Positions 3,710 through 56,021 of a stretch of DNA of 64,000 bases are shown here, in pieces. The stretch's first letter is position 1. The number at the start of each line of letters is the position of its first letter. The position numbers were made by a program, and so were the translations under genes. Below the pieces are notes generated by a model, which was given only the letters and a program-made list of their open reading frames with translations, did not search any database and was not told the DNA's origin. The DNA lies in sequence record NC_042013.1; one strand, written 5' to 3'.

Positions 3710-3767
3710 TACTCCTTGACAGTTTGGGGATTTGTGATAAACATTTCCCCAAACAACCAAAGGAGTA
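3710..3767 (+). promoter_or_regulatory. sigma70-like promoter nested in an RBS-occluding hairpin (pncB)
   Basis: TACTCCTT 3710-3717 / AAGGAGTA 3760-3767 plus GTTTGGGGA 3722-3730 / TCCCCAAAC 3746-3754; TTGACA 3716-3721; weak -10 (TAAACA) in loop. Confidence 0.75.
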
Positions 3768-5730: not shown

Positions 5731-5784
5731 TTGACTTAAATTTTGAAAATGCTATAACTCCTGCATCGAAACGTTGTAGGAGTT
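5731..5784 (+). promoter_or_regulatory. sigma70-like early promoter with anti-SD in discriminator
   Basis: TTGACT-N16-TATAAC; AACTCCTGCA 5756-5765 pairs with TGTAGGAGTT 5775-5784. Confidence 0.75.
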
Positions 5785-5788
5785 TTAT

Positions 5789-6148
5789 ATGTCTATGATT
5801 TTTAATGACGTAATAGAGTCTTTTGAAAATGGCGGAACCGCTGTTTTGGAATACGATTCATTTTCTGATTATGACCTTACTATTGTTGGTCTTGCTGATT
5901 ACAAATTTGATCTTTATAAGCGTTTCAAAAACGAACCTATTGAAACGGTCGAAGATTTTAATGATTTTTTTGCGGAAAAAGACAATGAAAGTATCTTTTT
6001 CTTTGAAATCGAAACAACGTCATCTTCTGAATTGAAGAAAATAGAAGACGCATATAATTCACTTGAAAACAAAACTGGTGTTTATATTGTTATTCCAGAT
6101 ACTATCAATTTTGAAACGAATCAAAAACGGTTTCATTTCTTCCGATAA
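5789..6148 (+). CDS. Hypothetical acidic protein
   Basis: ORF with AGGAG RBS and own promoter. Confidence 0.7.
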   Translation: MSMIFNDVIESFENGGTAVLEYDSFSDYDLTIVGLADYKFDLYKRFKNEPIETVEDFNDFFAEKDNESIFFFEIETTSSSELKKIEDAYNSLENKTGVYIVIPDTINFETNQKRFHFFR

Positions 6149-6152
6149 TCTA

Positions 6153-6204
6153 TTGACATTATTTTTCGATGGTGTATAACTCCTGCATCGAAACATTGAA
6201 GGAG
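6153..6204 (+). promoter_or_regulatory. Duplicate sigma70-like early promoter
   Basis: TTGACA-N16-TATAAC; the 20-mer TATAACTCCTGCATCGAAAC is identical at 5753-5772 and 6175-6194. Confidence 0.75.
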
Positions 6205-6211
6205 AACTAAA

Positions 6212-6589
6212 ATGTCCATGAATTTTTATGTTGCTAACATTGTTAACGGCGAATGCAAAATTCCATATTCTATGGATGCCTTGCGCTCCTTCAATGAAAC
6301 TGAAACAGGGGCATATATCGGTCCAAATTACGCCTATTGCCGTGATTTGGATGTTGGTTTTTCTGATGGAAATGCAAAGTTCTTGATGAACCGACTTGGT
6401 ATTAAGATTGAAAATGGATGCACTGACGAAATCCCTCTTAATCAAGAATTGGTGGATAAAATTGATACTCAGCTTGATTCTTTCTTCCAAGACGGAGAAT
6501 GGGAGGATTATCGGAGAATGATGCGTATTAAAACTCTTGTTCTTCTTGGTATTCATCAATATAAGGCAGACGTCATTTACGGCGCATAA
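6212..6589 (+). CDS. Hypothetical protein
   Basis: ORF with AGGAG RBS and own promoter. Confidence 0.7.
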   Translation: MSMNFYVANIVNGECKIPYSMDALRSFNETETGAYIGPNYAYCRDLDVGFSDGNAKFLMNRLGIKIENGCTDEIPLNQELVDKIDTQLDSFFQDGEWEDYRRMMRIKTLVLLGIHQYKADVIYGA

Positions 6590-9299: not shown

Positions 9300-9521
9300 T
9301 TAGTTAGAAGGGGTTTCTTCAGCAGACGCATTTTCAGTCGCTGCGGTTGCGTCTTGAGCAGCCTTGACGAAGGAAGCAAACTTGTCGCGAATCGAGCCAA
9401 CGCTCGAAAGTTCTTCGCCCTTGAAAGCACCACGCTGCGCAGCAGTATCAATAATAACTACGATGCTGGTAAGATCGGTAAGCGTGATTTGTGCAATATC
9501 AGAATTAGTTTCGGTTGTCAT
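9300..9521 (-). CDS. Small hypothetical protein (late)
   Basis: MTTETNSD..., GAGG RBS; host-like codon use. Confidence 0.7.
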   Translation of the reverse strand: MTTETNSDIAQITLTDLTSIVVIIDTAAQRGAFKGEELSSVGSIRDKFASFVKAAQDATAATENASAEETPSN

Positions 9522-9575
9522 TTTGAACCTCATTGTTAGTAACATATTTACTATATATTATTGAGGTTCAAAATG
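9519..9575 (-). promoter_or_regulatory. TAAATA late promoter inside a 14-bp RBS/AUG-occluding hairpin
   Basis: CATTTTGAACCTCA 9519-9532 / TGAGGTTCAAAATG 9562-9575; TATTTA 9545-9550. Confidence 0.8.
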
Positions 9576-9586
9576 TCAAAATTTAA

Positions 9587-10415: not shown

Positions 10416-11672
10416 TTAATGGTTTGAATACGCTTTAATAACAAATTTTCCTTTTTCCTCAAACATATGTGCGGTTGTCAAGTGGCCTCCTTTTCCAGAA
10501 CCGGTGTCGAGAAACACCACGCTGGAACCATCATCGTGATTGACGATGAAAGGTGAAATGTCACTTCTGATATCGTGGCCTACAATTGCTGATTTGCCTT
10601 TAAGCTCATCAACCCAATTGTAAAGACGCGTGGGGTATGAACCCTGCTTGTCCTCTTTGTCGGTTTCACCATAAACAGCTAAACTTTCAAGAAATCCATT
10701 CAATCTCGAGGTTTCAAATTTGAACATATCAATATGAGCGGCACCGTGGGTTAAGATGGTATCGCCAATGATAATATGATTTCTTGCCAATTCAACAACA
10801 CACGAAAATCGCGTTTCGAATTTCTTACGTTCTTTGAACGACATCTTCTCTACATAGTCCGTAGTCATTCTATTGCCATCAGACAATTTAACGGTAACTG
10901 CACCGCGCTTAGCTTGGTCAATCCAACGATATATTTTTCGTTCGTGATTCCCCAAAATCGCCGTTGCTTTACCTCTGGTCATCAAGTCATAGACAATATC
11001 AACGCAATCAATAGAGTCAGGGCCATAATCGATAATGTCACCAAGAAAAATCATATACATATTTCTTGCATTTGCCATATCGATTGCGGACTTTAAGGAC
11101 TCGCGCATACCGTGAATATCCGCTACAACCATTATTCCATTGAATGAAGAATTTCTAACGAAATCAGAGATATCACCGTATGGTGGTTTCTTGATGACAT
11201 CAAAATCCTCTTTTCTAAAATCAATAACAGTTGCAACGTGATCACCACGGAGGATGTCTTTTTCATTGGAAATGAAAACTTCTTCCATTCGATCAATTAT
11301 ATTACTATTTGATCTCCAGTCAGTGATTTTCTTTTTTTCTTCCATCGGGCGATTAACCACGATGTAAAAAATTGGAACATTCAATGAACGACCCAAATCG
11401 GTAAACGCTTGACGATCTCTCTTTTTAAGAAAAGTTGCGTCAAGAACTACACGTTCACCCATAGACAGTTTCAATGCTGCCCTATGTTCCATTTCTTTGA
11501 AAACAGCCCTAGCGTTATCATATGTTCTTGAAATGTCGCCATTAAACTCATAGCGAATAGCGTCGGAGCTAATGATTTCATAATCATCAAACTTGTTTTT
11601 TCCGAGAGTTGATTTTCCAGCGCCAGAAGGACCAACCATCATTACTAATGAATGTAACGGAATATTTTTCAT
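10416..11672 (-). CDS. Polynucleotide kinase-phosphatase (AAA_33 kinase plus metallophosphoesterase)
   Basis: GPSGAGKST, ISSDAIR, VLDAT; DIHG, GDIIDYGPDS, GNHE, GH, DTG. Confidence 0.9.
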   Translation of the reverse strand: MKNIPLHSLVMMVGPSGAGKSTLGKNKFDDYEIISSDAIRYEFNGDISRTYDNARAVFKEMEHRAALKLSMGERVVLDATFLKKRDRQAFTDLGRSLNVPIFYIVVNRPMEEKKKITDWRSNSNIIDRMEEVFISNEKDILRGDHVATVIDFRKEDFDVIKKPPYGDISDFVRNSSFNGIMVVADIHGMRESLKSAIDMANARNMYMIFLGDIIDYGPDSIDCVDIVYDLMTRGKATAILGNHERKIYRWIDQAKRGAVTVKLSDGNRMTTDYVEKMSFKERKKFETRFSCVVELARNHIIIGDTILTHGAAHIDMFKFETSRLNGFLESLAVYGETDKEDKQGSYPTRLYNWVDELKGKSAIVGHDIRSDISPFIVNHDDGSSVVFLDTGSGKGGHLTTAHMFEEKGKFVIKAYSNH

Positions 11673-11704
11673 GATGGTTGGTCCTTTCTCATATAAATTA
11701 ACCC

Positions 11705-33833: not shown

Positions 33834-33878
33834 AAAACCTCGGAAAAAACACTATATACGTATTTATTCCGAGGTTTT
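33834..33878 (-). promoter_or_regulatory. TAAATA late promoter inside a 12-bp RBS-occluding hairpin (holin candidate)
   Basis: AAAACCTCGGAA 33834-33845 / TTCCGAGGTTTT 33867-33878; TATTTA 33861-33866. Confidence 0.8.
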
Positions 33879-33884
33879 TATTTA

Positions 33885-34988
33885 TTAAATAATATTCCAA
33901 GTAGTTCCATCAAAGATGATGGTAACGCTTGCGTAATTTTCCTGAATTACTAAGTTTGACTGACCATCGATCAAGTCTACTGAGCTAATTGTTAAAGAAA
34001 AGTCTTCACTTATACCTTTACCATCTTTAACAATAATACGGCGTCCGTTAAGTTGGCCAGTAGGAATTGTTACGGATACAGGCTGATCGATTGTTGGTCT
34101 TGAAATAATAATAGAATCATCTTCACCAACTGTTGCGTTATCAGTAATAACGGTTACAGTTTCATTTGTACCAATTGCAGAATCTACATAAATTTTTGTT
34201 ACAAGAGCAAAATCATCAACTGGCGTATAATCGGTCGTTGCCAAGATTTGGCCGGTCGTGTCATCTGCGGTGTTCTTACCAACCTCGAGAACAATGTCAC
34301 CCGGTAATGCAGCAGCAACGTCAGAGTCACTTCCTGAAATAACGAGATTTACAGGATCGGTTGTCGACGTATTATTACCTACTTTAATCGTTAGTGATTC
34401 GTTTTCTGGCGTTTCAATAATAGAATCGCCCTCACCCATAATTGAAACTTTACCGCCTTCGCGGGGGGAAAGAAGGATGCTATCACCAACAAGATTAAAT
34501 GGACTACCTACATCGGCTTCAATAGTAGGAACGCCATCCGTATCTATTAAGACAGAACCGTCACCTTTAGGTTTCAAGATAAGATCGGCATTAGCGTTTT
34601 CACTTTCAGCCGCAATGATTGGTGTTTTATCGATGTCTCTCGGATAGATAACAATTACACTTTCGCCGCCTGTGGCAAATGTTATTTTATCTGGATTAAT
34701 CTGCGTATCAACCCACGTTTCGCCATCCTCGCTTACGATTCGATAACTGTCAGAACCGACTTTTTTCCAATCAGTTCCATCAAACACAACCAATGATAAT
34801 TCGTCGGTTTCGAAACGAATCATTCCCTCTACAGGAGAATTTGGTCTATCTGCTACCGTACCACTTGGGATACCTACACCGCCATTGTATTCGTTGGACC
34901 AGACGATATCTGTTCCATTGAAAACAACTAAATCGCCTGCACTTCCGCCAGTGGGTTTAGTAATCTGTTTAAGCTTTAGCAAAGCCAT
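33885..34988 (-). CDS. Virion structural / tail-fibre-associated protein
   Basis: IPSGTVADRP..P.EGMIRF fibre motif; C-terminal IIVKDG..G...N...S.T..FDG..W. Confidence 0.65.
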   Translation of the reverse strand: MALLKLKQITKPTGGSAGDLVVFNGTDIVWSNEYNGGVGIPSGTVADRPNSPVEGMIRFETDELSLVVFDGTDWKKVGSDSYRIVSEDGETWVDTQINPDKITFATGGESVIVIYPRDIDKTPIIAAESENANADLILKPKGDGSVLIDTDGVPTIEADVGSPFNLVGDSILLSPREGGKVSIMGEGDSIIETPENESLTIKVGNNTSTTDPVNLVISGSDSDVAAALPGDIVLEVGKNTADDTTGQILATTDYTPVDDFALVTKIYVDSAIGTNETVTVITDNATVGEDDSIIISRPTIDQPVSVTIPTGQLNGRRIIVKDGKGISEDFSLTISSVDLIDGQSNLVIQENYASVTIIFDGTTWNII

Positions 34989-36066: not shown

Positions 36067-36098
36067 ATTACCGGGGATAGAACATTATCCCCGGTAAT
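36067..36098. terminator. 13-bp GC-rich hairpin (terminator or RNA stability element)
   Basis: ATTACCGGGGATA / TATCCCCGGTAAT; no U-tract in the minus (coding) sense. Confidence 0.55.
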
Positions 36099-39017: not shown

Positions 39018-39075
39018 AAAAATCTCCAAGTACAAGTAAGGCTATATACCTATTTACTTATACAAGGAGATTTTT
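39018..39075 (-). promoter_or_regulatory. TAAATA late promoter inside an RBS-occluding hairpin
   Basis: AAAAATCTCC 39018-39027 / GGAGATTTTT 39066-39075; inner AAGTAA / TTACTT; TATTTA 39051-39056. Confidence 0.75.
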
Positions 39076-39437: not shown

Positions 39438-39521
39438 AATTGAGGACTCCGTTAAGTACGATCTAACGTCCGTCAATTATAAGTGTCTTTTTATAACTCG
39501 CTGAATTTCAAAGGCAAACGG

Positions 39522-43070: not shown

Positions 43071-43450
43071 TTGCTTGTCTCCCTGATATCATCAAATACT
43101 TTTTTCATATTTTCATTAATAGAGCGTTCAAGTGCTTCACGGTCAGTGTTAGCCTCTTTTTCCCATTCAGTATTGTTGATGCGTTCTTCTTCATCGTCTG
43201 ATTCTTTACGGATATCTTGAATAGATTTCAAATATTCCTCATGAAGACGAGCTTGCTTTTCGGCATCTTTTTTGAGTTGATCTAATTGCTTTGTTTGTAA
43301 GTCGATGGTCATTTGCTGCTTTGCGTTTTCAGCCTCAAGTGTTTTGATATCTGAACGCAAAGAATCAATGTAAAAATATGCGATTACACCTACTACAGAT
43401 GCGATCAATCCAATGATTAAATAAACCTTTATGCTTGACAAAAATTTCAT
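43067..43450 (-). CDS. i-spanin (Rz-like)
   Basis: N-terminal TM helix plus long coiled coil; start ATG 43450. Confidence 0.7.
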   Translation of the reverse strand: MKFLSSIKVYLIIGLIASVVGVIAYFYIDSLRSDIKTLEAENAKQQMTIDLQTKQLDQLKKDAEKQARLHEEYLKSIQDIRKESDDEEERINNTEWEKEANTDREALERSINENMKKVFDDIRETSK

Positions 43451-43495
43451 TGTAATATACTCCAATATACAACGTATTTAGCTATAGGAGATTCC

Positions 43496-43867
43496 ATGCC
43501 GTCGATGACAACTGTTTCTTGTAAATGTTGCAAGGCAAATTTCCAAGCGAGAACTGCTGATGTAAAACGGGGTTGGGGAAAATTCTGTTCCAAATCTTGC
43601 AAGGCAAAAACTCAAGAAAAACGCACAGGTCAATATGCAAATTTGATCCACGGAAAACGAAAGAGTTCTAAAAATACAAAAAAGAATTATAAACGCCACG
43701 ATGGCGTTTCACCCATGAAATTTAAAAAATGTTGCCAATGTGGGAACGCGGCAGTTAACGGATATCACACCACAACCGGTATTGATTGGTTGTGCGCATA
43801 TCATTTTGATAGATATGATAATTCTCACCCGTTCAGTTCAGACGCGCTTGGACAATGGGATGATTAA
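43496..43867 (+). CDS. Zn-binding hypothetical protein
   Basis: CKCC...FCSKSC and CCQC...LCAYH. Confidence 0.65.
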   Translation: MPSMTTVSCKCCKANFQARTADVKRGWGKFCSKSCKAKTQEKRTGQYANLIHGKRKSSKNTKKNYKRHDGVSPMKFKKCCQCGNAAVNGYHTTTGIDWLCAYHFDRYDNSHPFSSDALGQWDD

Positions 43868-44073
43868 TGGCCCTTTTTAATTATCAAATAGAGGCTATTA
43901 TTGTTGCCCTTGGGGATGTGATCTTTTATTCAAATTCACAATACAGCCACGGCGATGCTGTGGCTGCTGCTATTGTTAAATTTCATAAACTATATCCCAA
44001 TTACGATATACCAAGCGATTTTGATTTCGCAAATGTAATTAAAAAATTGAAATTGAGATGTCCCAATAGATAA
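43867..44073 (+). CDS. Small hypothetical protein
   Basis: Coupled ORF. Confidence 0.5.
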   Translation: MALFNYQIEAIIVALGDVIFYSNSQYSHGDAVAAAIVKFHKLYPNYDIPSDFDFANVIKKLKLRCPNR

Positions 44074-44105: not shown

Positions 44106-44492
44106 ATGAGTTCTTATAAAATTCGTAAAACGAATAGGAAAAAATTAGAAAACGCATTTATTAAAATCTATCGCGAGGAATCTCTAGTCAAAAACGATAG
44201 TAAATGCGTATATTGCCGGGAACCATTAACCTATAGATGCGTCACTGCCGATCACGTTACTCCAAAATCGGAAGGTGGTTTGAACCAAAAAGAAAACATA
44301 GTGGCATCTTGCCGAGATTGCAATCAAGCAAAAGCATCTATGCCAAAAGGAAAATTCACCAAGCTATTGAATTCAACTTTTCCAAGCGGTCAACCAATTA
44401 ACATACTCATGGCTTGGTCCAGAAGACGTTTAAACTTACAAACTGAACGTTCTTGTAAAAAAATTCTTGCATCTGTTGGAAGAAAAGAGTAA
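44106..44492 (+). CDS. HNH endonuclease
   Basis: CVYC...TADHVTPKSEGG...NIVASCRDCNQAKA. Confidence 0.88.
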   Translation: MSSYKIRKTNRKKLENAFIKIYREESLVKNDSKCVYCREPLTYRCVTADHVTPKSEGGLNQKENIVASCRDCNQAKASMPKGKFTKLLNSTFPSGQPINILMAWSRRRLNLQTERSCKKILASVGRKE

Positions 44493-44608: not shown

Positions 44609-44660
44609 TTGACATTTAATTTCATTAATATACTATGTTAGTATCGAAACGACATAGGAG
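44609..44660 (+). promoter_or_regulatory. sigma70-like early promoter with ATCGAAAC start element
   Basis: TTGACA-N16-TACTAT; ATCGAAAC at the same offset (34) as at 5731 and 6153; CTATGT / ACATAG pairing over the RBS. Confidence 0.7.
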
Positions 44661-44666
44661 ATATTA

Positions 44667-44894
44667 ATGCTTCGTCATAGTAGCGCCTTTAAAACGGATG
44701 TATCCTATTTTAACACTCTTAAGAACCAAAATAAAAAGAGAATTTTGGTTCTTACAAAAGATGATAAGATAAGATATGTCGTCCTTTCCAATAAACAACA
44801 TTACAACAGTGTTATTAAATCGTTTGATTCAAAATGGTTTAAAACTCTTATTGTTGTTCATTCCAAGATAAACGAAAAGGCAAAAATCAAATGA
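44667..44894 (+). CDS. Hypothetical basic protein
   Basis: AGGAG RBS. Confidence 0.6.
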   Translation: MLRHSSAFKTDVSYFNTLKNQNKKRILVLTKDDKIRYVVLSNKQHYNSVIKSFDSKWFKTLIVVHSKINEKAKIK

Positions 44895-47991: not shown

Positions 47992-48038
47992 ATTACACCT
48001 AAATACAATAAACAGTTAATTATGAAGGATATCACGTT

Positions 48039-48245
48039 ATGGGAGATAAAGTCAAATTTATTGATATTGGAAGCAAATCTATTAATGCATACGACATCGT
48101 CGCCCATTACATTGTAGACCAATCATATGTGATCGACTTGGTTTCAGACCGCCATATATTTAATAGCCCTGTTGACATCGCTGACCCTGAAGCTACTAAA
48201 CAAGAGGTATCTGATATAATAACTCAAATTGAAAATGATCAATAA
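48039..48245 (+). CDS. Small hypothetical protein
   Basis: GAAGGA RBS; TAAATA at 48000-48005. Confidence 0.55.
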   Translation: MGDKVKFIDIGSKSINAYDIVAHYIVDQSYVIDLVSDRHIFNSPVDIADPEATKQEVSDIITQIENDQ

Positions 48246-48968
48246 TCAAAGAACGAAATGGGCGGTCTTTCCAGTTTCGGATACTACAGCATATCCCTCT
48301 TCTGCTTTATAGACAGCATAGTCGTGACCAAAAATTCTTTGTAAATTTTCAACCATAAAATCAAAATCTTTTCTAAAATTCATGTTAGAAACGTGTTGAT
48401 AATGTTTACTAAATTCGTCAAAACTTTCATATAACGTTGTTTTAAAACGATGAGTTGAACGGCCATCGCCAATTATGACATTGCCTTCGTTAAGAGATAA
48501 CGTTCTAACGTTACTATTTGATACAAAATTTTTCAACGATTCCGCCAAATCCTCTTCAGCATTTGGCTTAGGATCGGTTCTTAATAACACGTGCAAAATA
48601 GTTTTATCAAGTTTGAAAACTTTTTCATGTTTGTAATACGTAAATTGCCAATCTTCGATGTTCGTTAACGCAGTCACATCTGCAATGATTGAAAGTATTT
48701 TGTTCTCGGTTTCAGTATTTCTTAGAATTTCAACAAAAACCATAAAGTAACCGTTTTCGTTGGCAGCAACTGATACCTCTGTATCAAGAATAGCCATCGC
48801 ACTTTTTTGAATAAAGCGATTGAGGTCTTTTGCTGCGAGTTCGTGTTTTACATAAAACCCAACCACTACCGCGTCATCATCGATTTTTGATTCAAATTCG
48901 TCTATTGATACAACAGGGAGAACTAGGTCAGCTAGATCGCCTGCTGCCAAACCTTCAACTATTTTCAT
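48246..48968 (-). CDS. Hypothetical protein
   Basis: L.EGL..GDL..LV...SIDEFESKI...VVVGF. Confidence 0.75.
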   Translation of the reverse strand: MKIVEGLAAGDLADLVLPVVSIDEFESKIDDDAVVVGFYVKHELAAKDLNRFIQKSAMAILDTEVSVAANENGYFMVFVEILRNTETENKILSIIADVTALTNIEDWQFTYYKHEKVFKLDKTILHVLLRTDPKPNAEEDLAESLKNFVSNSNVRTLSLNEGNVIIGDGRSTHRFKTTLYESFDEFSKHYQHVSNMNFRKDFDFMVENLQRIFGHDYAVYKAEEGYAVVSETGKTAHFVL

Positions 48969-49483
48969 TGTTCTTCCTCGTTTTGTTCTGTATCTTCGCC
49001 GCCGTCTTCTGCTGCGAATTGTGTATTTGTATCAATGTTTTCATCACGTGCGTCTGAAATATCTTCGATATCGATCATAGAGTCATACAATTCAAGATCG
49101 TCATCATCAAGCTCTTCAATAAACTGACGTGGAATTTTAATTGTAACAAGCCAAATTTCTTTTTCAACAAAAGCAGGACGACCATTTGCGGTGCTTGAAG
49201 GAGGAACAGTGTCGTCCTTCATTTTACGAAATGCTTTTGCGTATTTTACCTTTGCGCCGTGCTTTATAATTCTAACAGCGCCCTGTGGGTCTGGCATTTC
49301 ATCAATAGGAAACGCCAGAGTGATGGTAACCCAATATCGTTCGATATTAGGTCCATCAACTACTTCAGCATCAAACCAGTTGTCAAAAACGTAGACATCC
49401 AAATTATCAAGGAAGTCCTCAATTTGAATTAGAACTGAAATGAGCGTTGCATTTTTTTGTAATCTCGTTAAGAAATTTGACAT
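48965..49483 (-). CDS. Hypothetical protein
   Basis: L...EDFLD.LD.YV..NW...EVV.GP...RYWV...MPDP.G; start ATG 49483. Confidence 0.75.
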   Translation of the reverse strand: MSNFLTRLQKNATLISVLIQIEDFLDNLDVYVFDNWFDAEVVDGPNIERYWVTITLAFPIDEMPDPQGAVRIIKHGAKVKYAKAFRKMKDDTVPPSSTANGRPAFVEKEIWLVTIKIPRQFIEELDDDDLELYDSMIDIEDISDARDENIDTNTQFAAEDGGEDTEQNEEEQ

Positions 49484-49526
49484 CGCATAATATACCAAGT
49501 TTTTCCTTCTTAGGTATTTATGCGAT
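49482..49526 (-). promoter_or_regulatory. TAAATA late promoter in a hairpin covering the start codon
   Basis: ATCGCATAA / TTATGCGAT (9 bp) plus inner ATACC / GGTAT; TAAATA overlaps the 5' arm. Confidence 0.7.
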
Positions 49527-49531
49527 TTGTA

Positions 49532-50302
49532 TTAACTTAATTTGATATCCAAAAGTTGATAAAATAGATGCAATTTATTACCGGTCAAGCGATTAACTTC
49601 TCTGATATTGTCAACGTTTCCATCTTTAACGGCTTTGATAAGCATCGTATATTTTTTAGTAATATCATTTATATGTGACCCTTTGAATTTTTTCATTTGT
49701 TCAAAGTCACACGTCACTGATCCAGAGCTAAAAATTTCAAAATACCGGCTTGACAAGCAAAGGATAACAAAAAACACCTTGTCCTCAAAGGACATGTTAT
49801 CAATTTTATATGCGGCATTGTTATATGATTGTGCAGCACGATCACAAATGTTATTCCACTGTGGATCAATTTTGTCATACGGTGCTGGTTTTCCATTAGG
49901 AAACTTTTTCAAAAGCGTTTCTCGTGCTGCATTAATTTTTTCCTGACGCCTTTTAACTTCATTGTCAACGCGTTCATTAATAGCGGCGATTGATTGGATT
50001 GATTCATATCCACGCAATGAAACTGCTAAGATCAGTTCCTCAAACAAGCTAACAATAGTTTCGTCCTCGGTGTGCTTAGCCGCATCAAGAATCATCAATT
50101 CAAATGCAAATGGCATTAGGTCAAGACGTTCTGCCATACCCATACGTCCGATATTACTTGCACTTGGATAGTTGATTTGTGGTTTTGATTTAGCGGTATT
50201 AGTAAGCGTCTCAAACAGTTTGGATTCTGCCGCCGCCTCTCGTTCTTTTTCCATCAGTTCAATCATTTCACCACTAATAATAAAATTTTCATCCATAATC
50301 AT
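49532..50302 (-). CDS. Hypothetical helical protein
   Basis: ORF in operon. Confidence 0.65.
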   Translation of the reverse strand: MIMDENFIISGEMIELMEKEREAAAESKLFETLTNTAKSKPQINYPSASNIGRMGMAERLDLMPFAFELMILDAAKHTEDETIVSLFEELILAVSLRGYESIQSIAAINERVDNEVKRRQEKINAARETLLKKFPNGKPAPYDKIDPQWNNICDRAAQSYNNAAYKIDNMSFEDKVFFVILCLSSRYFEIFSSGSVTCDFEQMKKFKGSHINDITKKYTMLIKAVKDGNVDNIREVNRLTGNKLHLFYQLLDIKLS

Positions 50303-50970
50303 GATACAACTCCTGCCTTTTTCAAAAGATTAATAACGGTTTCATATGAAAATTTACGTTCTTTGATATATTCTATGTCAAATTCAACGATATTATATCC
50401 ATCCATGTTAACTTTTTTAATACATTCATTCATTCCACGAACAATTTTTTGTTCGAATGGTGTGAGATTGAAAATAGAAAATGGAAGAGAAACAATCTTA
50501 GTTTCGATATGTTCACACATAAGAGCGTACTGTTCTTTGACAGCCTCCGCTCTGTCATCAAGAGTTTTTGACGTCTCGAGACTCCGTTTATGATTGTTAA
50601 TACTATCATAGTATTGCTTCATTCTCATGTCATTTTGAAGTTTTACAGAATTATATTTTTTTGAAATTTGTTCACCGATTTCTGGAATCGTCAAAACTGC
50701 TCGCGTGATGAGACTTTCTATTTCGTTTGAAAGGAGAGAAAGTTTTTCATTATTTTTTGTGGACGTCAAAAATTGCAAAACCGTATCAACCAGAACAGGT
50801 TCGCATCCTATCATTTCGGATATTTCATTAGATGGGGGGAAAATAATACGAGGAGCAGATTCCAACTCAGGTCTTATTGGTTCAGAACTATAATAGCGAC
50901 TCGTTTGCCTAAGAGACGAAATTGATCGTCCCTCGTCAAAAATAGCCTGAGCATTTTCCTGCGTTATCAT
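50299..50970 (-). CDS. Hypothetical helical protein
   Basis: Start MITQEN at 50970 with AAGGAG RBS. Confidence 0.7.
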   Translation of the reverse strand: MITQENAQAIFDEGRSISSLRQTSRYYSSEPIRPELESAPRIIFPPSNEISEMIGCEPVLVDTVLQFLTSTKNNEKLSLLSNEIESLITRAVLTIPEIGEQISKKYNSVKLQNDMRMKQYYDSINNHKRSLETSKTLDDRAEAVKEQYALMCEHIETKIVSLPFSIFNLTPFEQKIVRGMNECIKKVNMDGYNIVEFDIEYIKERKFSYETVINLLKKAGVVS

Positions 50971-50977
50971 CAAAATA

Positions 50978-51026
50978 TCTCCTTTCATTGAGTTTTTACA
51001 CTACAATGAAAGGAGAGTATTGTCAA
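50978..51026 (-). promoter_or_regulatory. sigma70-like promoter whose spacer is a perfect 13-nt anti-RBS
   Basis: TTGACA-N17-TAGTGT; TCTCCTTTCATTG 50978-50990 / CAATGAAAGGAGA 51004-51016. Confidence 0.85.
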
Positions 51027-51791
51027 TCAAACATCTACATCTTTGTAGAGTTCAAGAATTTCTTTAATAACAGGATGGCGTTCAACATTTTTATAGCTGA
51101 ACTTAACCACATCGATCATACGGCTGTTTTCAAATCTCGTCAAGAAATCTGAAAGACCGTTGTCTTTGCCTCTATCGCCCTGTCTTTCGTCACCAGTAAT
51201 GATAAGTTTAGAGCCTTCACCAATACGAGTTAGTACTGATAGCATAGAACGTACTGTTGAGTTCTGTGCTTCGTCAAAAATCACCCACGCTTTCTTAAAT
51301 GTTCGACCACGGATATATGCAATTGGAACTAGTTCAATAATGCCTTCTTCAAGCATTTTTTCAATTTCCATTTTACTAAAGTATTCATTGAATACGTCAA
51401 GCACCGGTTGACACCAAGGGGCTAATTTAGCGATAATATCACCGGGAAGGAAACCAATGTCTTTATCATCAACTGCGATGTTTGGACGTGTTACGACAAT
51501 CTTTTCTATCTCACCTGCCTTTAATGCTTTGATTGCCATAGTTGTTGCTACGTGGGTTTTACCCGTACCTGCTGGACCAACAGCAAAAACGATATGTTTG
51601 CGCTTATCAGACAAACTTTCGATTAATGCCTCTTGTTCAACATTTTTTGGAAGAATGTTTACTTCTTTTGATCTTTTTTTGGTAGGGATGTCAAGTTCAA
51701 TCACGTTGTCTTTGCGTGAACGGTGATTGGAACGCGGGGCGCGTTCTTGACGAGAGGAACGATTATTACGGGTTGCTGCTCTTTTAGCCAA
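51027..51791 (-). CDS. phoH: PhoH-family ATPase
   Basis: GPAGTGKT, TRP, IGFLPG, YIRGRT, DEAQN, TRIGEGS, GD..Q.D, RH; probable TTG start 51791. Confidence 0.93.
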   Translation of the reverse strand: MAKRAATRNNRSSRQERAPRSNHRSRKDNVIELDIPTKKRSKEVNILPKNVEQEALIESLSDKRKHIVFAVGPAGTGKTHVATTMAIKALKAGEIEKIVVTRPNIAVDDKDIGFLPGDIIAKLAPWCQPVLDVFNEYFSKMEIEKMLEEGIIELVPIAYIRGRTFKKAWVIFDEAQNSTVRSMLSVLTRIGEGSKLIITGDERQGDRGKDNGLSDFLTRFENSRMIDVVKFSYKNVERHPVIKEILELYKDVDV

Positions 51792-51870
51792 AGTCATCTC
51801 CTGACAATTTAGGCTTCTCACATAAGTATTTATCTTTTAAAAAAGCAGATAATGTGACAGTTATATGAAA

Positions 51871-51888
51871 ATGGCCCTTGCGGGCCAT
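51871..51888. terminator. Intrinsic terminator
   Basis: ATGGCCC-TTGC-GGGCCAT flanked by A/T runs. Confidence 0.8.
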
Positions 51889-51893
51889 ATTTT

Positions 51894-52514
51894 TTAAGCT
51901 ATCCAACCGGGGTGCGTACACCCATCATTTGTGATACAATCGTAAATTTCTTTCCAAGACCAAACTCGCTTTGCGCCAGTTTCTTTGAAGTGACGATTGT
52001 ATGTTCGTGTAATCAAAAATGACATATGACCAAGGCGAGCACCGTCCTCCGCGTGTTTCGGATGATCCTCAATCCAATATGTAGGTCTATAACGGCTAAG
52101 ATATTTTTCTTTACTTGCTCCAACAGGAACAAGATGAACCGTATCAAACGTGTCTGGAAAATATTTTTCAAGATTTCCCCTACGCGCTTCTTTATGCCAT
52201 TCGTCGTCGTTACAAGCGGATATCGCAACGAATTTGTATCCCTCTCGTTTCAACCACGAAACGGTGTCAACAGCATCTTCCATAGGTTCCAAATAAGGAA
52301 ACCAATCTGGATCATTATTGAAATCACGAACAATTGGTCGGGTATCCTCATATGACATACCTAGCCAATCCTCAACGTTCATTGAATCGCGCAAGCCGAC
52401 TAGTGGAACAGCTACACCATATTTCAAATGATTAGCCCTGAACCACTTTTCAAATCCGTTTCCCCAATTAAGAAGAACACCGTCAACATCTGTTAAAATG
52501 AATTTATTCGTCAT
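51894..52514 (-). CDS. HAD-family nucleotidase (T4 gp30.2-like)
   Basis: TDVDGVLLNW, AISA, WIEDH; start ATG 52514. Confidence 0.8.
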   Translation of the reverse strand: MTNKFILTDVDGVLLNWGNGFEKWFRANHLKYGVAVPLVGLRDSMNVEDWLGMSYEDTRPIVRDFNNDPDWFPYLEPMEDAVDTVSWLKREGYKFVAISACNDDEWHKEARRGNLEKYFPDTFDTVHLVPVGASKEKYLSRYRPTYWIEDHPKHAEDGARLGHMSFLITRTYNRHFKETGAKRVWSWKEIYDCITNDGCTHPGWIA

Positions 52515-52818
52515 TATTACCACCTCCAAACATAGCTTTAGCTGCCGCCATATTTTCAGGTGACGCCTGCGCCCAAGCCGCAATAAATTTACCAATTTCT
52601 TCACGATAACGGCTTACGTAATCAATAAACGGGTTGTCGTTTTCTTCCTCAAAACGGTTCTTTATGACCTTTCCATTAAACAAATCAAAAATCAAGGACG
52701 CGCTTGTTAAAATATTTGCTTTTGGAAGAGTATCATACAATCTCATATTTTCAACGACCTTACCCTCGAGATTGGTATCTTTATGAATATGAGTAATTAC
52801 CATATAGATTGTTTTCAT
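52504..52818 (-). CDS. Hypothetical protein
   Basis: ORF in operon. Confidence 0.65.
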   Translation of the reverse strand: MKTIYMVITHIHKDTNLEGKVVENMRLYDTLPKANILTSASLIFDLFNGKVIKNRFEEENDNPFIDYVSRYREEIGKFIAAWAQASPENMAAAKAMFGGGNNDE

Positions 52819-52819
52819 A

Positions 52820-53767
52820 TTAAGTTTCCTTTACGCGCTGTAGATTGACTAAGCATGCAGCGAGATTAATTTCAGGATCAAAAATTGTAGTGTGAATGTT
52901 TGCAGCCTCGGCAATAGTAATCAGAGCCATATTATGATGCTCCTCGGTATCACCAAACAGTTCAAGATTTTTAGAGAAATAACGATAGACATCCTCATAC
53001 GTACCGTCGCCCATTTGTGCGCAAAGATATTTACGAGCCTCCGTATATTTTCCTGCCAGAAACATTTCGCAAAAAGTTACGATATAATCTAGACTTGCGT
53101 CGGTTCCGGCTTCCATCTTGTTAAGAGTGCCGTTGATAGTATTCTGCTCAAGAAGATTGATACATTTACGCATATCTGGAAATGTCTTTTCAACATAATC
53201 CAAAATATGCTCTGGTTCGAACGTTACGTCTTCGGAAACAAGAATGTCAAAAACACGCGTTACAAATCCCTCTTTATCCAGACCGTCAAGATGAAACCCT
53301 TGAACACGACTATGAAGAGCGGGGATGATTTTTGATGCGGTGTTAGCGGTAAGAATGAAACGCGCTGTATCTGAATGCAATTCCATTTCCGCACGCAACG
53401 CCTTTTGAGCGGCAGGAGTGAAACCGTCGACCTCGTCAAGAATTACAATTTTGAAATCGCCCATAGGCCAAGTAGAACAGAAATTAGAAATATTCTGACG
53501 AACCTCGTCAATACCGTTATTTCTGGATGCATTGATATAAAGCAAATCAGCTTTTTCAACTTTCATTTCATTACAAAGAATGAAAGCAAGTGTAGTCTTG
53601 CCAGTACCCTGTACACCACTCAATAAAAGATGTGGAATAGGAATGTTCTTTTTTTCAGGATTGGCAAGCCAACCAAGAACGGTTTCTTTCATACGTTCGT
53701 CTTTAAAGACATATCCTTCGATACCAGAAGGACGATATTTTTCTACCCAAAGTTCTTTAATAGCCAT
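52820..53767 (-). CDS. Clamp loader AAA+ subunit (gp44/RFC-like)
   Basis: LWVEKYRP, GVQGTGKT, INAS, ILDEVD, LHSR, PDMR. Confidence 0.92.
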   Translation of the reverse strand: MAIKELWVEKYRPSGIEGYVFKDERMKETVLGWLANPEKKNIPIPHLLLSGVQGTGKTTLAFILCNEMKVEKADLLYINASRNNGIDEVRQNISNFCSTWPMGDFKIVILDEVDGFTPAAQKALRAEMELHSDTARFILTANTASKIIPALHSRVQGFHLDGLDKEGFVTRVFDILVSEDVTFEPEHILDYVEKTFPDMRKCINLLEQNTINGTLNKMEAGTDASLDYIVTFCEMFLAGKYTEARKYLCAQMGDGTYEDVYRYFSKNLELFGDTEEHHNMALITIAEAANIHTTIFDPEINLAACLVNLQRVKET

Positions 53768-53769
53768 TT

Positions 53770-53821
53770 GTTATAGTCCGTTATTTTGTTTATTTCTAAC
53801 TGTAACAAACCGGCCTATAAC
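53770..53821 (-). promoter_or_regulatory. Long imperfect hairpin over the clamp-loader RBS
   Basis: GTTATAG / CTATAAC, CCG / CGG and TTTGTT / AACAAA stems; TAAATA lies upstream (53829-53838). Confidence 0.5.
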
Positions 53822-53835
53822 GTTTCAATATTTAT

Positions 53836-54018
53836 TTAATGAAATCTCAATATAAACGCAGAAGCATCTTCACCACGTTTGAAGCTTACATTTGATGGAG
53901 ACCAAACGTAATGAACAATTTCCATGTCCGCGCACCATTCATCGATTTCTTCTTTAGTCACACCCTCAGGGATTTCGATATTATGTAGGCCAACAGTTAA
54001 TAGATTTTTTACGACCAT
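53836..54018 (-). CDS. Minimal paralogue-family protein (60 aa)
   Basis: EEIDEWC...VSFKRGEDASAFILRF; AGGAG RBS. Confidence 0.7.
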   Translation of the reverse strand: MVVKNLLTVGLHNIEIPEGVTKEEIDEWCADMEIVHYVWSPSNVSFKRGEDASAFILRFH

Positions 54019-54025
54019 GAAAAAA

Positions 54026-54079
54026 GGCTCCTGATTTATAACAAAAAGTTATAATATCAAGAGCCAAATAAAATGTCAA
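54026..54079 (-). promoter_or_regulatory. sigma70-like promoter inside a 17-bp RBS-occluding hairpin
   Basis: TTGACA-N17-TATTAT; GGCTCTTGAT / ATCAGGAGCC plus TTATAAC / GTTATAA. Confidence 0.85.
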
Positions 54080-54083
54080 ATAG

Positions 54084-54419
54084 TTATTGTACTTCTAATG
54101 GTTTGGTTTCGGATACAAGAAGAATTGCGTCATTGTCAATTCTCTGTACATAATAGTCGCCGGATTCAATTGACACGTTAAATCCCATTGTCCAACGACC
54201 GTGTTCAACAAGAAGCCATTCACCCGGTTTAACATAGTCGATCTTTGATCCAACCTTATAAACCTTGCACCAACGTGGTTTGATGCCTTCTTGCGTACCA
54301 TTGTCATCACGGAGAATAATCCCCCCTCTGGTCAACTTTTCACCCTGTTCCATTTCATATACTAAGATATGATCGGAAACCGGTTTAACATCGCGTCCTT
54401 TAGTGTCTCTAAACTGCAT
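54084..54419 (-). CDS. groES: GroES-like co-chaperonin
   Basis: KPVSDHILV...TRGGIIL...VYKVG...VKPGE. Confidence 0.88.
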   Translation of the reverse strand: MQFRDTKGRDVKPVSDHILVYEMEQGEKLTRGGIILRDDNGTQEGIKPRWCKVYKVGSKIDYVKPGEWLLVEHGRWTMGFNVSIESGDYYVQRIDNDAILLVSETKPLEVQ

Positions 54420-54426
54420 TTATTTC

Positions 54427-54837
54427 TCACTCTTCATCATCATCAACAAGGGTTCGTGGCTTTACCGGAGTTCTAATCGGAGAAGGTTTCTTCACGATTG
54501 CTGCTGGTTGTTCGGCACTTGTTGCCTTTTCAGCTTGTGCTGCCTTCTTCGCTTCCGCAGCAAGACGAATAGCTTCAGCAGGTGTCACAAACACATCTGG
54601 CTGAATTGTTTCTGGCTTGTGCACGTCACCTTCGATTTCGGTATTGTAATTCGTTTCAAGTTCTTCACGGGTGTACTTTACCTTACCATTACGGTCTAGT
54701 GCGTCACCACGTGCATTCATACGAATGGTTGAACTTCTACCCGTAACAGCTACGGTCTCTTGATTATTTGAAAGGATTGCTTCAACGTCGACGGGAACGC
54801 CTCTCATTGAAACATATTTACCAACTGTCATTATCAT
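54427..54837 (-). CDS. Hypothetical protein
   Basis: SMRGVPVD...MNARGD.LD..G. Confidence 0.75.
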   Translation of the reverse strand: MIMTVGKYVSMRGVPVDVEAILSNNQETVAVTGRSSTIRMNARGDALDRNGKVKYTREELETNYNTEIEGDVHKPETIQPDVFVTPAEAIRLAAEAKKAAQAEKATSAEQPAAIVKKPSPIRTPVKPRTLVDDDEE

Positions 54838-54846
54838 TCTCCTAAT

Positions 54847-55380
54847 TTATTCAAGGAATTCCGAAAAGTCTAGATCATATTTTATACTATTTACTTTATG
54901 AACGCCTATGATATACAAAATATAACTACTTACACAACTCCCACGACCAACGCCTTTGACAACGTTATGCTCTCTAAAAGTATCCGTAAGGAACAAAAGA
55001 GCTTTGAGAACCATTTCAAGGTCATATTCTTTGTATTTCTCATATTCGAAATCTACACGACTTCTTTCTTCTTCGGTATTTACTCTGGTTATTATATACG
55101 AGTATATATCCATATTTCTATATTTTTCAGGAATATTCCAAATATTTTGACGTTCTTTGTCATATTCCTCTACCGAAATACTTGGTTTGTTATATGGATG
55201 TAATACTTTATGAGCCTCGTCGGTTGTTCTCACGCTTGTATTATAAACGTCAAGTGCATCTGACTGTATTACTTTAAAGTCGCTGATATCACCGCCTTGA
55301 ATAAGAACGTCATATAGTTGTTCAACTGTTGAATATACTATACCATAATCGTCAACTGTTCTATTTTTAAGTTCTATCAT
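54847..55380 (-). CDS. Truncated DNA polymerase III alpha (DnaE) palm-like protein
   Basis: GVGRGSCVSSYILYIIG...IKYDLDFSEFL; stops before the PDxD catalytic motif. Confidence 0.8.
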   Translation of the reverse strand: MIELKNRTVDDYGIVYSTVEQLYDVLIQGGDISDFKVIQSDALDVYNTSVRTTDEAHKVLHPYNKPSISVEEYDKERQNIWNIPEKYRNMDIYSYIITRVNTEEERSRVDFEYEKYKEYDLEMVLKALLFLTDTFREHNVVKGVGRGSCVSSYILYIIGVHKVNSIKYDLDFSEFLE

Positions 55381-56021
55381 TTTCCACCGTCAAATACCGT
55401 TGGTACAAAACCTGTTCTTTTTTCAACCAATTCTTCAGGGACGTATGATGGCTCAACATTGATATAATCAGACTCGGTTGGAACTAAGTCAACGGTTGAA
55501 TAATCCGTTCTATCAAACCAAGGTTTTTTGTGAAACGAAGTTGGCCCAATCCATTCAAGCATTGATACCGGTTCAAGATCATTCTTGGTAGGATTTTTTT
55601 GAATACCAAATTCGTCGCCACCACCTGACTGAACTACAGAAATCGTGTCGTAAATAACTCTACCTTCACCAAGAGCATGGAGCTTTCTAAAAATAGTTGA
55701 GGCAATTGCAGCATCCGAGAGATTGCTAGGTATCAATACAACATTATTATCTACAATAGATTTATAATTTTTAAGGAAAATTTCTTTTGCAATTGCATTT
55801 TCTGAATCGATAAAAACGGATCGATTTAGATATTTTAAAATGAACCTATTTTTTCGATGGAGTAATTCGTTCACTTCATCCGTACTAAAATAGTCATCGG
55901 CAGAAAATCCGAATAAACCAGAAATAGTCATCTTTGATGGTATCAAAGTTTTGTGCATGTAGAGAGTTGCATTAATTGTATGGGAAAAAGAGTTTTTTGC
56001 GTTTTGAGCAATATTGAACAT
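55377..56021 (-). CDS. Hypothetical protein
   Basis: ORF; WFDR.D.ST.D. Confidence 0.7.
   Translation of the reverse strand: MFNIAQNAKNSFSHTINATLYMHKTLIPSKMTISGLFGFSADDYFSTDEVNELLHRKNRFILKYLNRSVFIDSENAIAKEIFLKNYKSIVDNNVVLIPSNLSDAAIASTIFRKLHALGEGRVIYDTISVVQSGGGDEFGIQKNPTKNDLEPVSMLEWIGPTSFHKKPWFDRTDYSTVDLVPTESDYINVEPSYVPEELVEKRTGFVPTVFDGGK

Follow-up and report, generated by a model that had tools for sequence, protein, structure and literature searches.

Promoter spacers complementary to downstream Shine-Dalgarno sequences in jumbo phage Atu_ph07: candidate self-insulating cassettes

In Agrobacterium phage Atu_ph07, two sigma70-type promoters, one behind phoH and one behind a GroES-like gene, carry in their spacer or -10 region a sequence that pairs with the Shine-Dalgarno sequence (SD) of the next gene. 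The resulting hairpins exceed chance expectation and are conserved in relatives. We think it fairly probable that each site is a self-insulating cassette, in which RNA entering from upstream would have its SD masked and would probably be terminated in part, and the downstream gene would be expressed from its own promoter. The window, i.e. the whole stretch of 64,000 nucleotides that was analysed, is identical (100% match) to bases 186001–250000 of this T4-related jumbo phage, whose genome comprises 490,380 bp. A search of the literature found no published treatment of Atu_ph07 promoters, terminators or transcription. Genome-wide counts refer to the first 250 kb of the 490-kb genome and its 322 annotated starts; an SD-aware ORF caller of our own reproduced only about 60% of those annotated starts that were checked, and was dropped in favour of the annotation.

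Two hairpins that join a promoter to the next Shine-Dalgarno sequence

The initial annotation had described the spacer of a TTGACA-N17-TAGTGT promoter as encoding a perfect 13-nt anti-RBS. This is what the sequence holds at site 1: TCTCCTTTCATTG (51016–51004) is the exact reverse complement of CAATGAAAGGAGA (50990–50978), which gives a perfect 13-bp stem around a 13-nt loop (50991–51003) that contains the putative -10. The SD, AAAGGAGA, ends 7 nt ahead of the annotated gp308 ATG (50970). The TTGACA lies 56 nt upstream of this ATG, within the 50–69 nt band common to 75 cassettes, and the predicted +1 falls at about 50993–50989. The putative -10 matches TATAAT at three of six positions, keeping T-12, A-11 and T-7. 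Site 1 is without the A-rich upstream region found in most cassettes, and its promoter is absent from the listing of a generic promoter scan.

The same layout had been claimed, with 17 bp of pairing, for the region behind groES, and it was found there, provided that one wobble pair is counted and a bulge allowed for. The hairpin of site 2 (54065–54026) consists of 10 + 7 = 17 bp with one bulged A (54055) and one G.U, and its loop (54043–54047) contains the predicted +1 (about 54044; range 54046–54042). Both upstream gene names hold as well. In addition to the Pfam matches of PhoH (4e-66) and Cpn10 (1.8e-5), gp314 matches the PHROG category ‘head morphogenesis’ (1e-18). No function was obtained from Pfam or PHROGs for gp308, gp313 or gp307. 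The phoH gene is preceded by a late-type ATAAATA (51827–51833, minus strand), a motif often followed by nnnATATA at such genes, and this upstream element predicts that phoH is a late gene in Atu_ph07. A canonical terminator is located at 51871–51888, upstream of the phoH promoter.

Table 1 Features of the two focal sites and of further hairpins over translation starts (positions are those of the window)
Feature	Coordinates	Strand	Remarks
phoH (gp309)	51027..51791	-	PhoH family; putative source of read-through into site 1
Site 1, -35 TTGACA	51021..51026	-	from sequence; directly after phoH stop TGA (51029-51027)
Site 1, spacer	51020-51004	-	17 nt; from sequence
Site 1, 5' arm (anti-SD) TCTCCTTTCATTG	51004..51016	-	within the 17-nt promoter spacer
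Site 1, putative -10 TAGTGT	50998..51003	-	weak 3/6 match; tentative -10 assignment
Site 1, 3' arm CAATGAAAGGAGA	50978..50990	-	contains SD AAAGGAGA (50985-50978)
Site 1, U-rich tail UAUUUUG	50971..50977	-	is the SD-AUG spacer; from terminator tail score
gp308	50299..50970	-	gene predicted to be insulated; 223 aa; fast-evolving
gp314	54084..54419	-	Cpn10/GroES-like, T4 gp31-type; upstream of site 2
Site 2, -35 TTGACA	54074..54079	-	N17 with TATTAT; 11/12 promoter match
Site 2, -10 TATTAT	54051-54056	-	near-consensus promoter, 11/12
Site 2, 5' arm GGCTCTTGAT-A-TTATAAC	54048..54065	-	overlaps -10 TATTAT
Site 2, 3' arm GTTATAAATCAGGAGCC	54026..54042	-	holds SD AGGAG (54028-54032)
Site 2, U6 tract	54020..54025	-	abuts GC-rich stem base; doubles as SD-AUG spacer
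gp313	53836..54018	-	gene predicted to be insulated; 60 aa, ATG at 54018; without known family
Third case, gp251	9519..9579	-	TTGACA 9574-9579; spacer pairs over 14 perfect bp with SD GAGG and AUG
Fourth case, gp242	3710..3767	+	UACUCCUU, overlapping -35 TTGACA (3716-3721), pairs with AAGGAGUA
T4-style hairpin, gp285	33834..33878	-	12-bp stem buries SD; ATAAATA at junction of 5' arm and loop
SD-burying hairpin, gp290	39018..39075	-	-25.7 kcal/mol; late-like GTAAATA in loop region

Promoter classes, chance expectation and conservation

The two promoters belong to a larger set. In the first 250 kb, TTGAC occurs 50–69 nt upstream of the start at 75 of the 322 genes; the reverse complement is found there at 4. 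When the cassettes are aligned on the -35, the sequence is seen to be A-rich upstream of it and T-rich in the spacer, with TATAAC or TATTAT as the -10 after 16–17 nt; the cassettes precede enzymes and small hypothetical ORFs and not a single annotated virion gene. TTGAC is thus a genuine positioned promoter class, and both focal sites share its geometry. The phage also encodes a gp55-like late sigma factor. ATAAATA, which resembles the T4 late promoter TATAAATA, peaks 30–49 nt ahead of the start, at 23 genes within the first 250 kb (one for the reverse complement), among them tail tube, tail sheath, tail fibre, prohead core, the virion protein gp306 and phoH. It is absent from both focal sites, where the promoters are of the TTGACA-N17 sigma70 type. 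These counts amount to a first working map of the promoters of Atu_ph07, with an early class (TTGAC, 75 of 322 genes) and a late one (ATAAATA).

One unit of about 75 nt accounts, in near-identical copies, for about 26–30 of the cassettes in the first 250 kb; the focal sites are not among these copies. The repeated unit, TTGACW-TTATTTTT..GTGTATAACT-..CATCGAAACG..AGGAG..ATG, stands before small ORFs at 5731–5791 (+) and 6153–6214 (+) of the window and resembles the promoter-early stem-loops (PeSLs) discussed below. Its leader motif CATCGAAAC is kept even in copies that are unable to pair with the spacer, and only the ‘CGATGGTGT’ spacer subtype forms a 12-bp helix around the -10. Two nominal cassettes, at window positions 34988 and 32790, are probably false positives, as they lie in coding DNA and the TTGAC is lost in a relative. 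Two others bear on the annotation: a TTGACA cassette with a good SD at 43435–43867 (+) points to an ATG at 43496 (123-aa ORF), and one at 44609–44894 (+) to an ATG at 44667 (75-aa ORF). Of these two ORFs the annotation in the record covers only the 3' parts, as gp296 (from 43715) and gp297 (from 44745). The ORFs 43867–44073 and 44106–44492, in the gap with gp296 and gp297, are unannotated.

Folding of the long RNA, which includes the 5' arm, gave minimum free energies of -23.8 kcal/mol at site 1 and -24.4 kcal/mol at site 2, with every SD base paired. The corresponding z-scores were -5.4 and -6.6, none of 200 shuffles being equally stable, and RNAs that begin at the predicted +1 were nearly unfolded (-0.7 and -1.8 kcal/mol). 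Perfect stems of at least 13 bp occur six times in the window, where Markov-shuffled sequence leads one to expect 0.0; for stems of at least 11 bp the count is 11 against 0.9, and at least 5 of the 11 overlap a translation start. The arm sequences of both sites are unique in 250 kb, the two sites have no motif in common, and a search with the Rfam 15 covariance models returned no match at E ≤ 1 within 48000–56000.

A stricter null was built from chimeras, in which the promoter part of one gene is joined to the leader of another (n=1892, from 44 unique cassettes). The statistic ‘SD touches spacer in the MFE fold’ was rejected as compositional, since native cassettes (0.64) scored much as chimeras did (0.55 ± 0.06), and was replaced by interaction energy and counts of strong hairpins. 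The promoter/leader interaction energy was -20.4 kcal/mol at site 1 and -22.1 kcal/mol at site 2, compared with -16.0 kcal/mol for the best of the 1892 chimeras; sites 2 and 1 are the strongest two among the 44 unique cassettes. Native promoter/leader pairs are on the whole more complementary than chimeras (mean ddG -6.95 vs -4.74 ± 0.35), and strong SD-sequestering hairpins are three-fold more frequent (23% vs 7.6% ± 3.6%). An SD within a hairpin of dG ≤ -12 was found at 15 of 65 cassette genes and at 8 of 166 other genes. Only four native cassettes surpass all chimeras, all of them in the window: sites 2 and 1, the gp251 cassette at 9519–9579 (ddG -20.3, without a U tail, tail score -1.50) and the gp242 cassette at 3710–3767 (-29.0 kcal/mol, ddG -16.2, with an extra inner 9-bp helix between spacer and leader and without a U tract). 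A strong anti-SD hairpin is therefore not a universal rule of this genome, about 4 of 44 unique cassettes lying clearly beyond the chimera null.

Other translation starts in the phage are buried in different ways. A late ATAAATA motif is found in the loop of hairpins that are not part of TTGAC cassettes, namely at gp127 (tail tube, outside the window), 33834–33878 and 39018–39075. At 39438–39490 (-), upstream of gp291, TTGAC stands about 41 nt from the ATG inside a hairpin that buries the SD GGAG and the AUG; this region shows 99% identity with the relative L017. At 11627–11686 (-), the gene for gp253 (NinI-like phosphatase) has its SD and AUG paired with its own codons ~10–15 in a perfect hairpin of 16 bp. 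The anti-SD there lies downstream and hence in every transcript, so that this masking is of a different, constitutive kind.

Conservation was examined in collinear syntenic blocks. Homologues of gp308 at 65–68% amino-acid identity led to seven syntenic contigs (L010–L016), and nucleotide identity is 78.5% across a 10.7-kb block, gp308 alone having 69%; an IMG/VR scan with gp308 returned only Atu_ph07 itself and a weak 33% match (L009). Across the seven relatives, nothing has changed in the 26 arm bases, the TTGACA or the TAGnGT frame of site 1. Changes are confined to three of the five other spacer bases, position 4 of the hexamer (T, C or A, giving TAGCGT or TAGAGT as the -10 in relatives) and the SD-AUG spacer; among these close relatives the site thus displays conservation without covariation. 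Among the variants listed for four metagenomic DNA runs, one was usable, in the metagenomic relative of run X3: a 1-nt insertion at 50971 that lengthens the U run in the gp308 SD-AUG gap, outside the stem.

Site 2 evolves in another manner. Each haplotype carries 2–4 substitutions in the stem and all keep 17–19 bp: an A>G change yields a G.U pair, a coupled AU>UA with A>C opposite moves the bulge, and a change in the loop adds a pair. Folded one by one, as the bulge shifts the register between haplotypes, they range from -23.3 to -27.5 kcal/mol, with the -35 TTGACA and the U6 tract invariant. In the hairpin-free gp281 cassette, used as a control in a relative of similar distance, the -35, -10 and SD are kept and 7 of 17 spacer bases have changed. 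The stems of the gp285, gp290 and gp291 hairpins are invariant in that same relative, L017. These comparisons support purifying or structure-preserving selection on the stems. The terminator after the tail-fibre gene gp288 (36067–36098) compares with L017:4327–4358 (approximate) as having identical stems and a reverse-complemented 6-nt loop, which indicates, from sequence, a palindromic element inverted between relatives.

A more distant comparison is offered by Sinorhizobium phage Phosso, which has 48% GC and is syntenic with Atu_ph07. In its promoter downstream of phoH the spacer, GGUUCCUGUGU, pairs with the SD AGGAGCC (-18.3 kcal/mol, z -3.2). This helix differs in sequence from that of Atu_ph07; the structure has thus been kept while the sequence was replaced. 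Both SD and AUG are buried in the Phosso clamp-loader cassette (-22.9 kcal/mol, z -6.3), and dedicated canonical terminators stand at the positions of both focal sites. Downstream of the Phosso GroES gene (L002:1453–1491) a TTGACT promoter was noticed whose putative -10 is followed, 7 nt further on, by an in-frame ATG; the small gene at this place may have a leaderless mRNA and may start 57 nt upstream of the annotated GTG. In the deep relative L019, whose ligase is 45% identical, the intergenic gap before the ligase gene is only 26 nt, which allows no comparison of cassettes.

Proposed mechanism and competing explanations

From the sequences, folds, statistical excess, conservation and positional promoter class we infer promoter activity, +1 positions, read-through, termination and an effect on translation, which combine into the following model. 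Each site would be a self-insulating promoter-leader cassette. Polymerase arriving from the upstream gene would transcribe the promoter DNA, coming at site 1 from phoH, probably from its late ATAAATA promoter, and at site 2 from the GroES-like operon. The transcribed spacer or -10 region would then supply the 5' arm of a stable hairpin (-21 kcal/mol), with the SD of the next gene as the 3' arm, and the hairpin would hide this SD from 30S subunits. At the U-rich tract behind it, part of the upstream transcription would probably be terminated just before the AUG; such termination is likely to be strong at site 2 and weaker or partial at site 1, SD masking serving for the remaining read-through. 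Host sigma70 polymerase at the embedded TTGACA would start between the arms and make an RNA without the 5' arm. This short RNA would neither terminate nor hide its SD and would be translated, so that the downstream gene would be expressed only from its own promoter.

No start from these promoters would include the 5' arms (51016–51004 and 54065–54048), which are placed inside the -10 hexamers or upstream of them; only read-through RNA can therefore form the hairpin. Opening the SD-AUG region costs 18.6 kcal/mol (site 1) and 14.5 kcal/mol (site 2) in read-through RNA and 2.5–4.8 kcal/mol in RNA from the predicted +1, a gap of 10–15 kcal/mol between the long and short forms. The relation between the stability of the initiation region and translation is well established, and by it the long form would be silenced. 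Across the cassettes sense RNA folds better than antisense (-12.8 vs -9.8, p = 1e-8), a difference to which composition may contribute; site 2 folds 5 kcal/mol better as sense than as antisense RNA.

Features of intrinsic terminators accompany the hairpins. With a TransTermHP-type formula, site 1 obtains a tail score of -3.76, the same as the canonical terminator ahead of the phoH promoter and within the top 5.5% of tails that follow an SD; site 2 obtains -5.19 (top 0.5%). Site 2 has a stem base of G-C, G-C and C-G followed by UUUUUU; site 1 shows these features in part, with UAUUUUG and a 13-nt loop. A generic terminator scan missed site 2 for its bulge and site 1 for the length of its loop. 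SD-AUG spacers contain more U at genes with an SD hairpin (4.2 vs 2.6 of 8, p = 2e-7), and tails with at least 5 U of 8 occur in 7 of 20 cassette hairpins, compared with 6% in the background. The original proposal that one sequence acts both as promoter and as translational silencer was strengthened by the positioned TTGAC class, the arm upstream of +1, the SD opening cost and the signs of selection. Its stress on translation is less secure, as the terminator-grade U tails and the Phosso terminators mean that the hairpins may stop upstream RNA instead or too. Taken together, these tails and terminators point to insulators with two probable outputs on upstream RNA. If the RNA entering site 1 is late, gp308 would be restricted to the period in which its own sigma70-type promoter is active.

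The U tails are also the main argument for a competing reading, rather unlikely in our estimate, in which the sites are purely PeSL-like composite terminator-promoters for the phoH and GroES units and masking is an irrelevant side effect, since few transcripts would pass the terminator; the SD would sit in the 3' arm only through the compactness of the genome, a purine-rich SD being the handiest GC-containing partner. The two tail scores, the invariant U6 behind a GC-rich stem base, the U-rich tails of the cassette hairpins and the Phosso terminators at exactly both positions all agree with it. So does the own late promoter of the downstream gene gp306, which makes late read-through across gp308 unneeded, and PeSL stem-loops over the -35/-10 have been shown to terminate (PMC2839356, PMC4122927). 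What it fails to account for is that comparable hairpins at 9519–9575 and 3710–3767 lack a U tract, that Phosso retains a spacer:SD helix besides a good terminator, and that site 1 has a long loop (13 nt) and, in relatives, invariant arms beside a tail that has decayed to UUUAAUG. The presence of T4-type late-promoter hairpins in the same genome also speaks against it. A role in RNA processing or stability, as an RNase III/E-type site or a protective stem at the 3' end of the upstream mRNA and with no regulation of the gene downstream, seems improbable. Stable, conserved, intergenic hairpins would suit it, and T4-type phages rely heavily on mRNA processing near SDs, for instance by RegB (PMC3014915); yet stems of 13–17 bp are short for RNase III, the sites share no sequence motif and have no Rfam match, and the precise placement of the 5' arm upstream of the +1 of a positioned promoter would be left unexplained.

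An element acting as DNA, i.e. an operator for a dimeric regulator over the promoter or a recombination or cruciform site as in PeSL shuffling, we regard as more improbable still. The palindromes do overlap promoters, PeSLs are substrates of recombination (PMC2839356, PMC4122927), and the inverted terminator loop at 36067–36098 demonstrates that hairpin DNA can flip. However, the arm sequence differs at every site and none recurs in 250 kb; site 2 tolerates and gains G.U, a mismatch in DNA and in antisense RNA; its bulge moves while the number of RNA pairs stays; and the sense strand folds better. That a T/C-rich spacer and a purine-rich SD should be complementary by chance has next to no probability left. 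Contact of SD and spacer is indeed common even in chimeras, but the fold z-scores, the failure of all 1892 chimeras to reach the strength of the sites, the six stems of at least 13 bp where none is expected and arms that are invariant or compensated across 78%-identical relatives effectively refute it. The self-insulating cassette, with masking and probable termination, is the reading that we retain.

Relation to known systems

Hairpins that sequester the RBS and contain an internal promoter have been described for T4 e (lysozyme), soc, 49 and I-TevI and for Aeh1 mobE; transcripts from the internal promoter lack the 5' arm and are translated, and the hairpin of gene e represses about 100-fold (PMC3014915). 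The sites in Atu_ph07 resemble the T4 set (e, soc, 49, I-TevI) in that the SD and/or AUG is buried, by computation, in a local helix on RNA initiated upstream, and in that the +1 falls between the arms and promoter DNA encodes the 5' arm, here judged from motif, geometry and conservation. They differ in the promoter, which is a late gp55-type TATAAATA in the T4 set and a sigma70-type -35/N17/-10 at the focal sites, and in their anti-SD, which resides in the promoter spacer or -10; they also have terminator-like U tails. The temporal logic is predicted to be reversed, with an early-type gene shielded from upstream RNA that is probably late at site 1. The late promoter of the T4 set has its counterpart in the hairpins at 33834–33878, 39018–39075 and gp127.

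PeSLs (promoter-early stem-loops) are known from the T4-type phages RB49/phi1, PST and nt-1, and their stem-loop, which often overlaps the -35/-10 boxes or is placed between them, terminates or attenuates upstream transcription (PMC2839356, PMC4122927). Shared with them is the compact intergenic cassette, in which a stop codon and an AT-rich region are followed by a sigma70-like promoter, a stem-loop and then the SD and ATG. PeSL cassettes recur many times beside small ORFans; Atu_ph07 has about 26–30 near-identical cassettes in 250 kb, and the focal sites are unique sequences. The stem-loop of a PeSL is a small unit apart from the SD, and both its arms precede the +1; at the focal sites, in contrast, the SD itself forms the 3' arm, beyond the predicted +1. 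The sites in Atu_ph07 are thus PeSL-like early cassettes whose 3' arm has moved past the +1 onto the SD, a combination of the two layouts.

As in intrinsic terminators, a stable stem is directly followed by a U tract, with a GC-rich base and U6 at site 2; unlike them, the stem holds the promoter -10 and the SD (site 2) and the U tract is the SD-AUG spacer, and at site 1 the loop is long and the U tract interrupted. The T4 endonuclease RegB inactivates early mRNAs at GGAG (PMC3014915). The outcome, early-gene SDs that become unusable after the early period, would be the same, but RegB reaches it by enzymatic cleavage and not by cis RNA structure.

The focal elements introduce no new principle of gene regulation, as the self-masking arrangement is already seen in T4 e, soc, 49 and I-TevI and in PeSL cassettes. 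What the sites add is the use of a sigma70-type spacer as anti-SD, the merger of two known layouts and the probable late-into-early logic. More tentatively, it is possible, if doubtful, that some of the genes of Atu_ph07 and its relatives form fully self-insulated modules, with an element of about 60 nt that merges sigma70 promoter, terminator and anti-SD. If so, transcription and translation from outside would be blocked and the gene's own transcripts exempt, early genes could lie inside late units and be off late without a RegB-like nuclease, and accessory ORFs could be shuffled independently of context; compact natural insulator parts of about 60 nt may also be of use in synthetic biology. 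If confirmed, the sites would extend the T4 principle of a promoter within an RBS hairpin from late to host-type early promoters, carry it to a distant jumbo-phage lineage of an alphaproteobacterial host, and add to it a merged terminator/anti-SD/promoter element.
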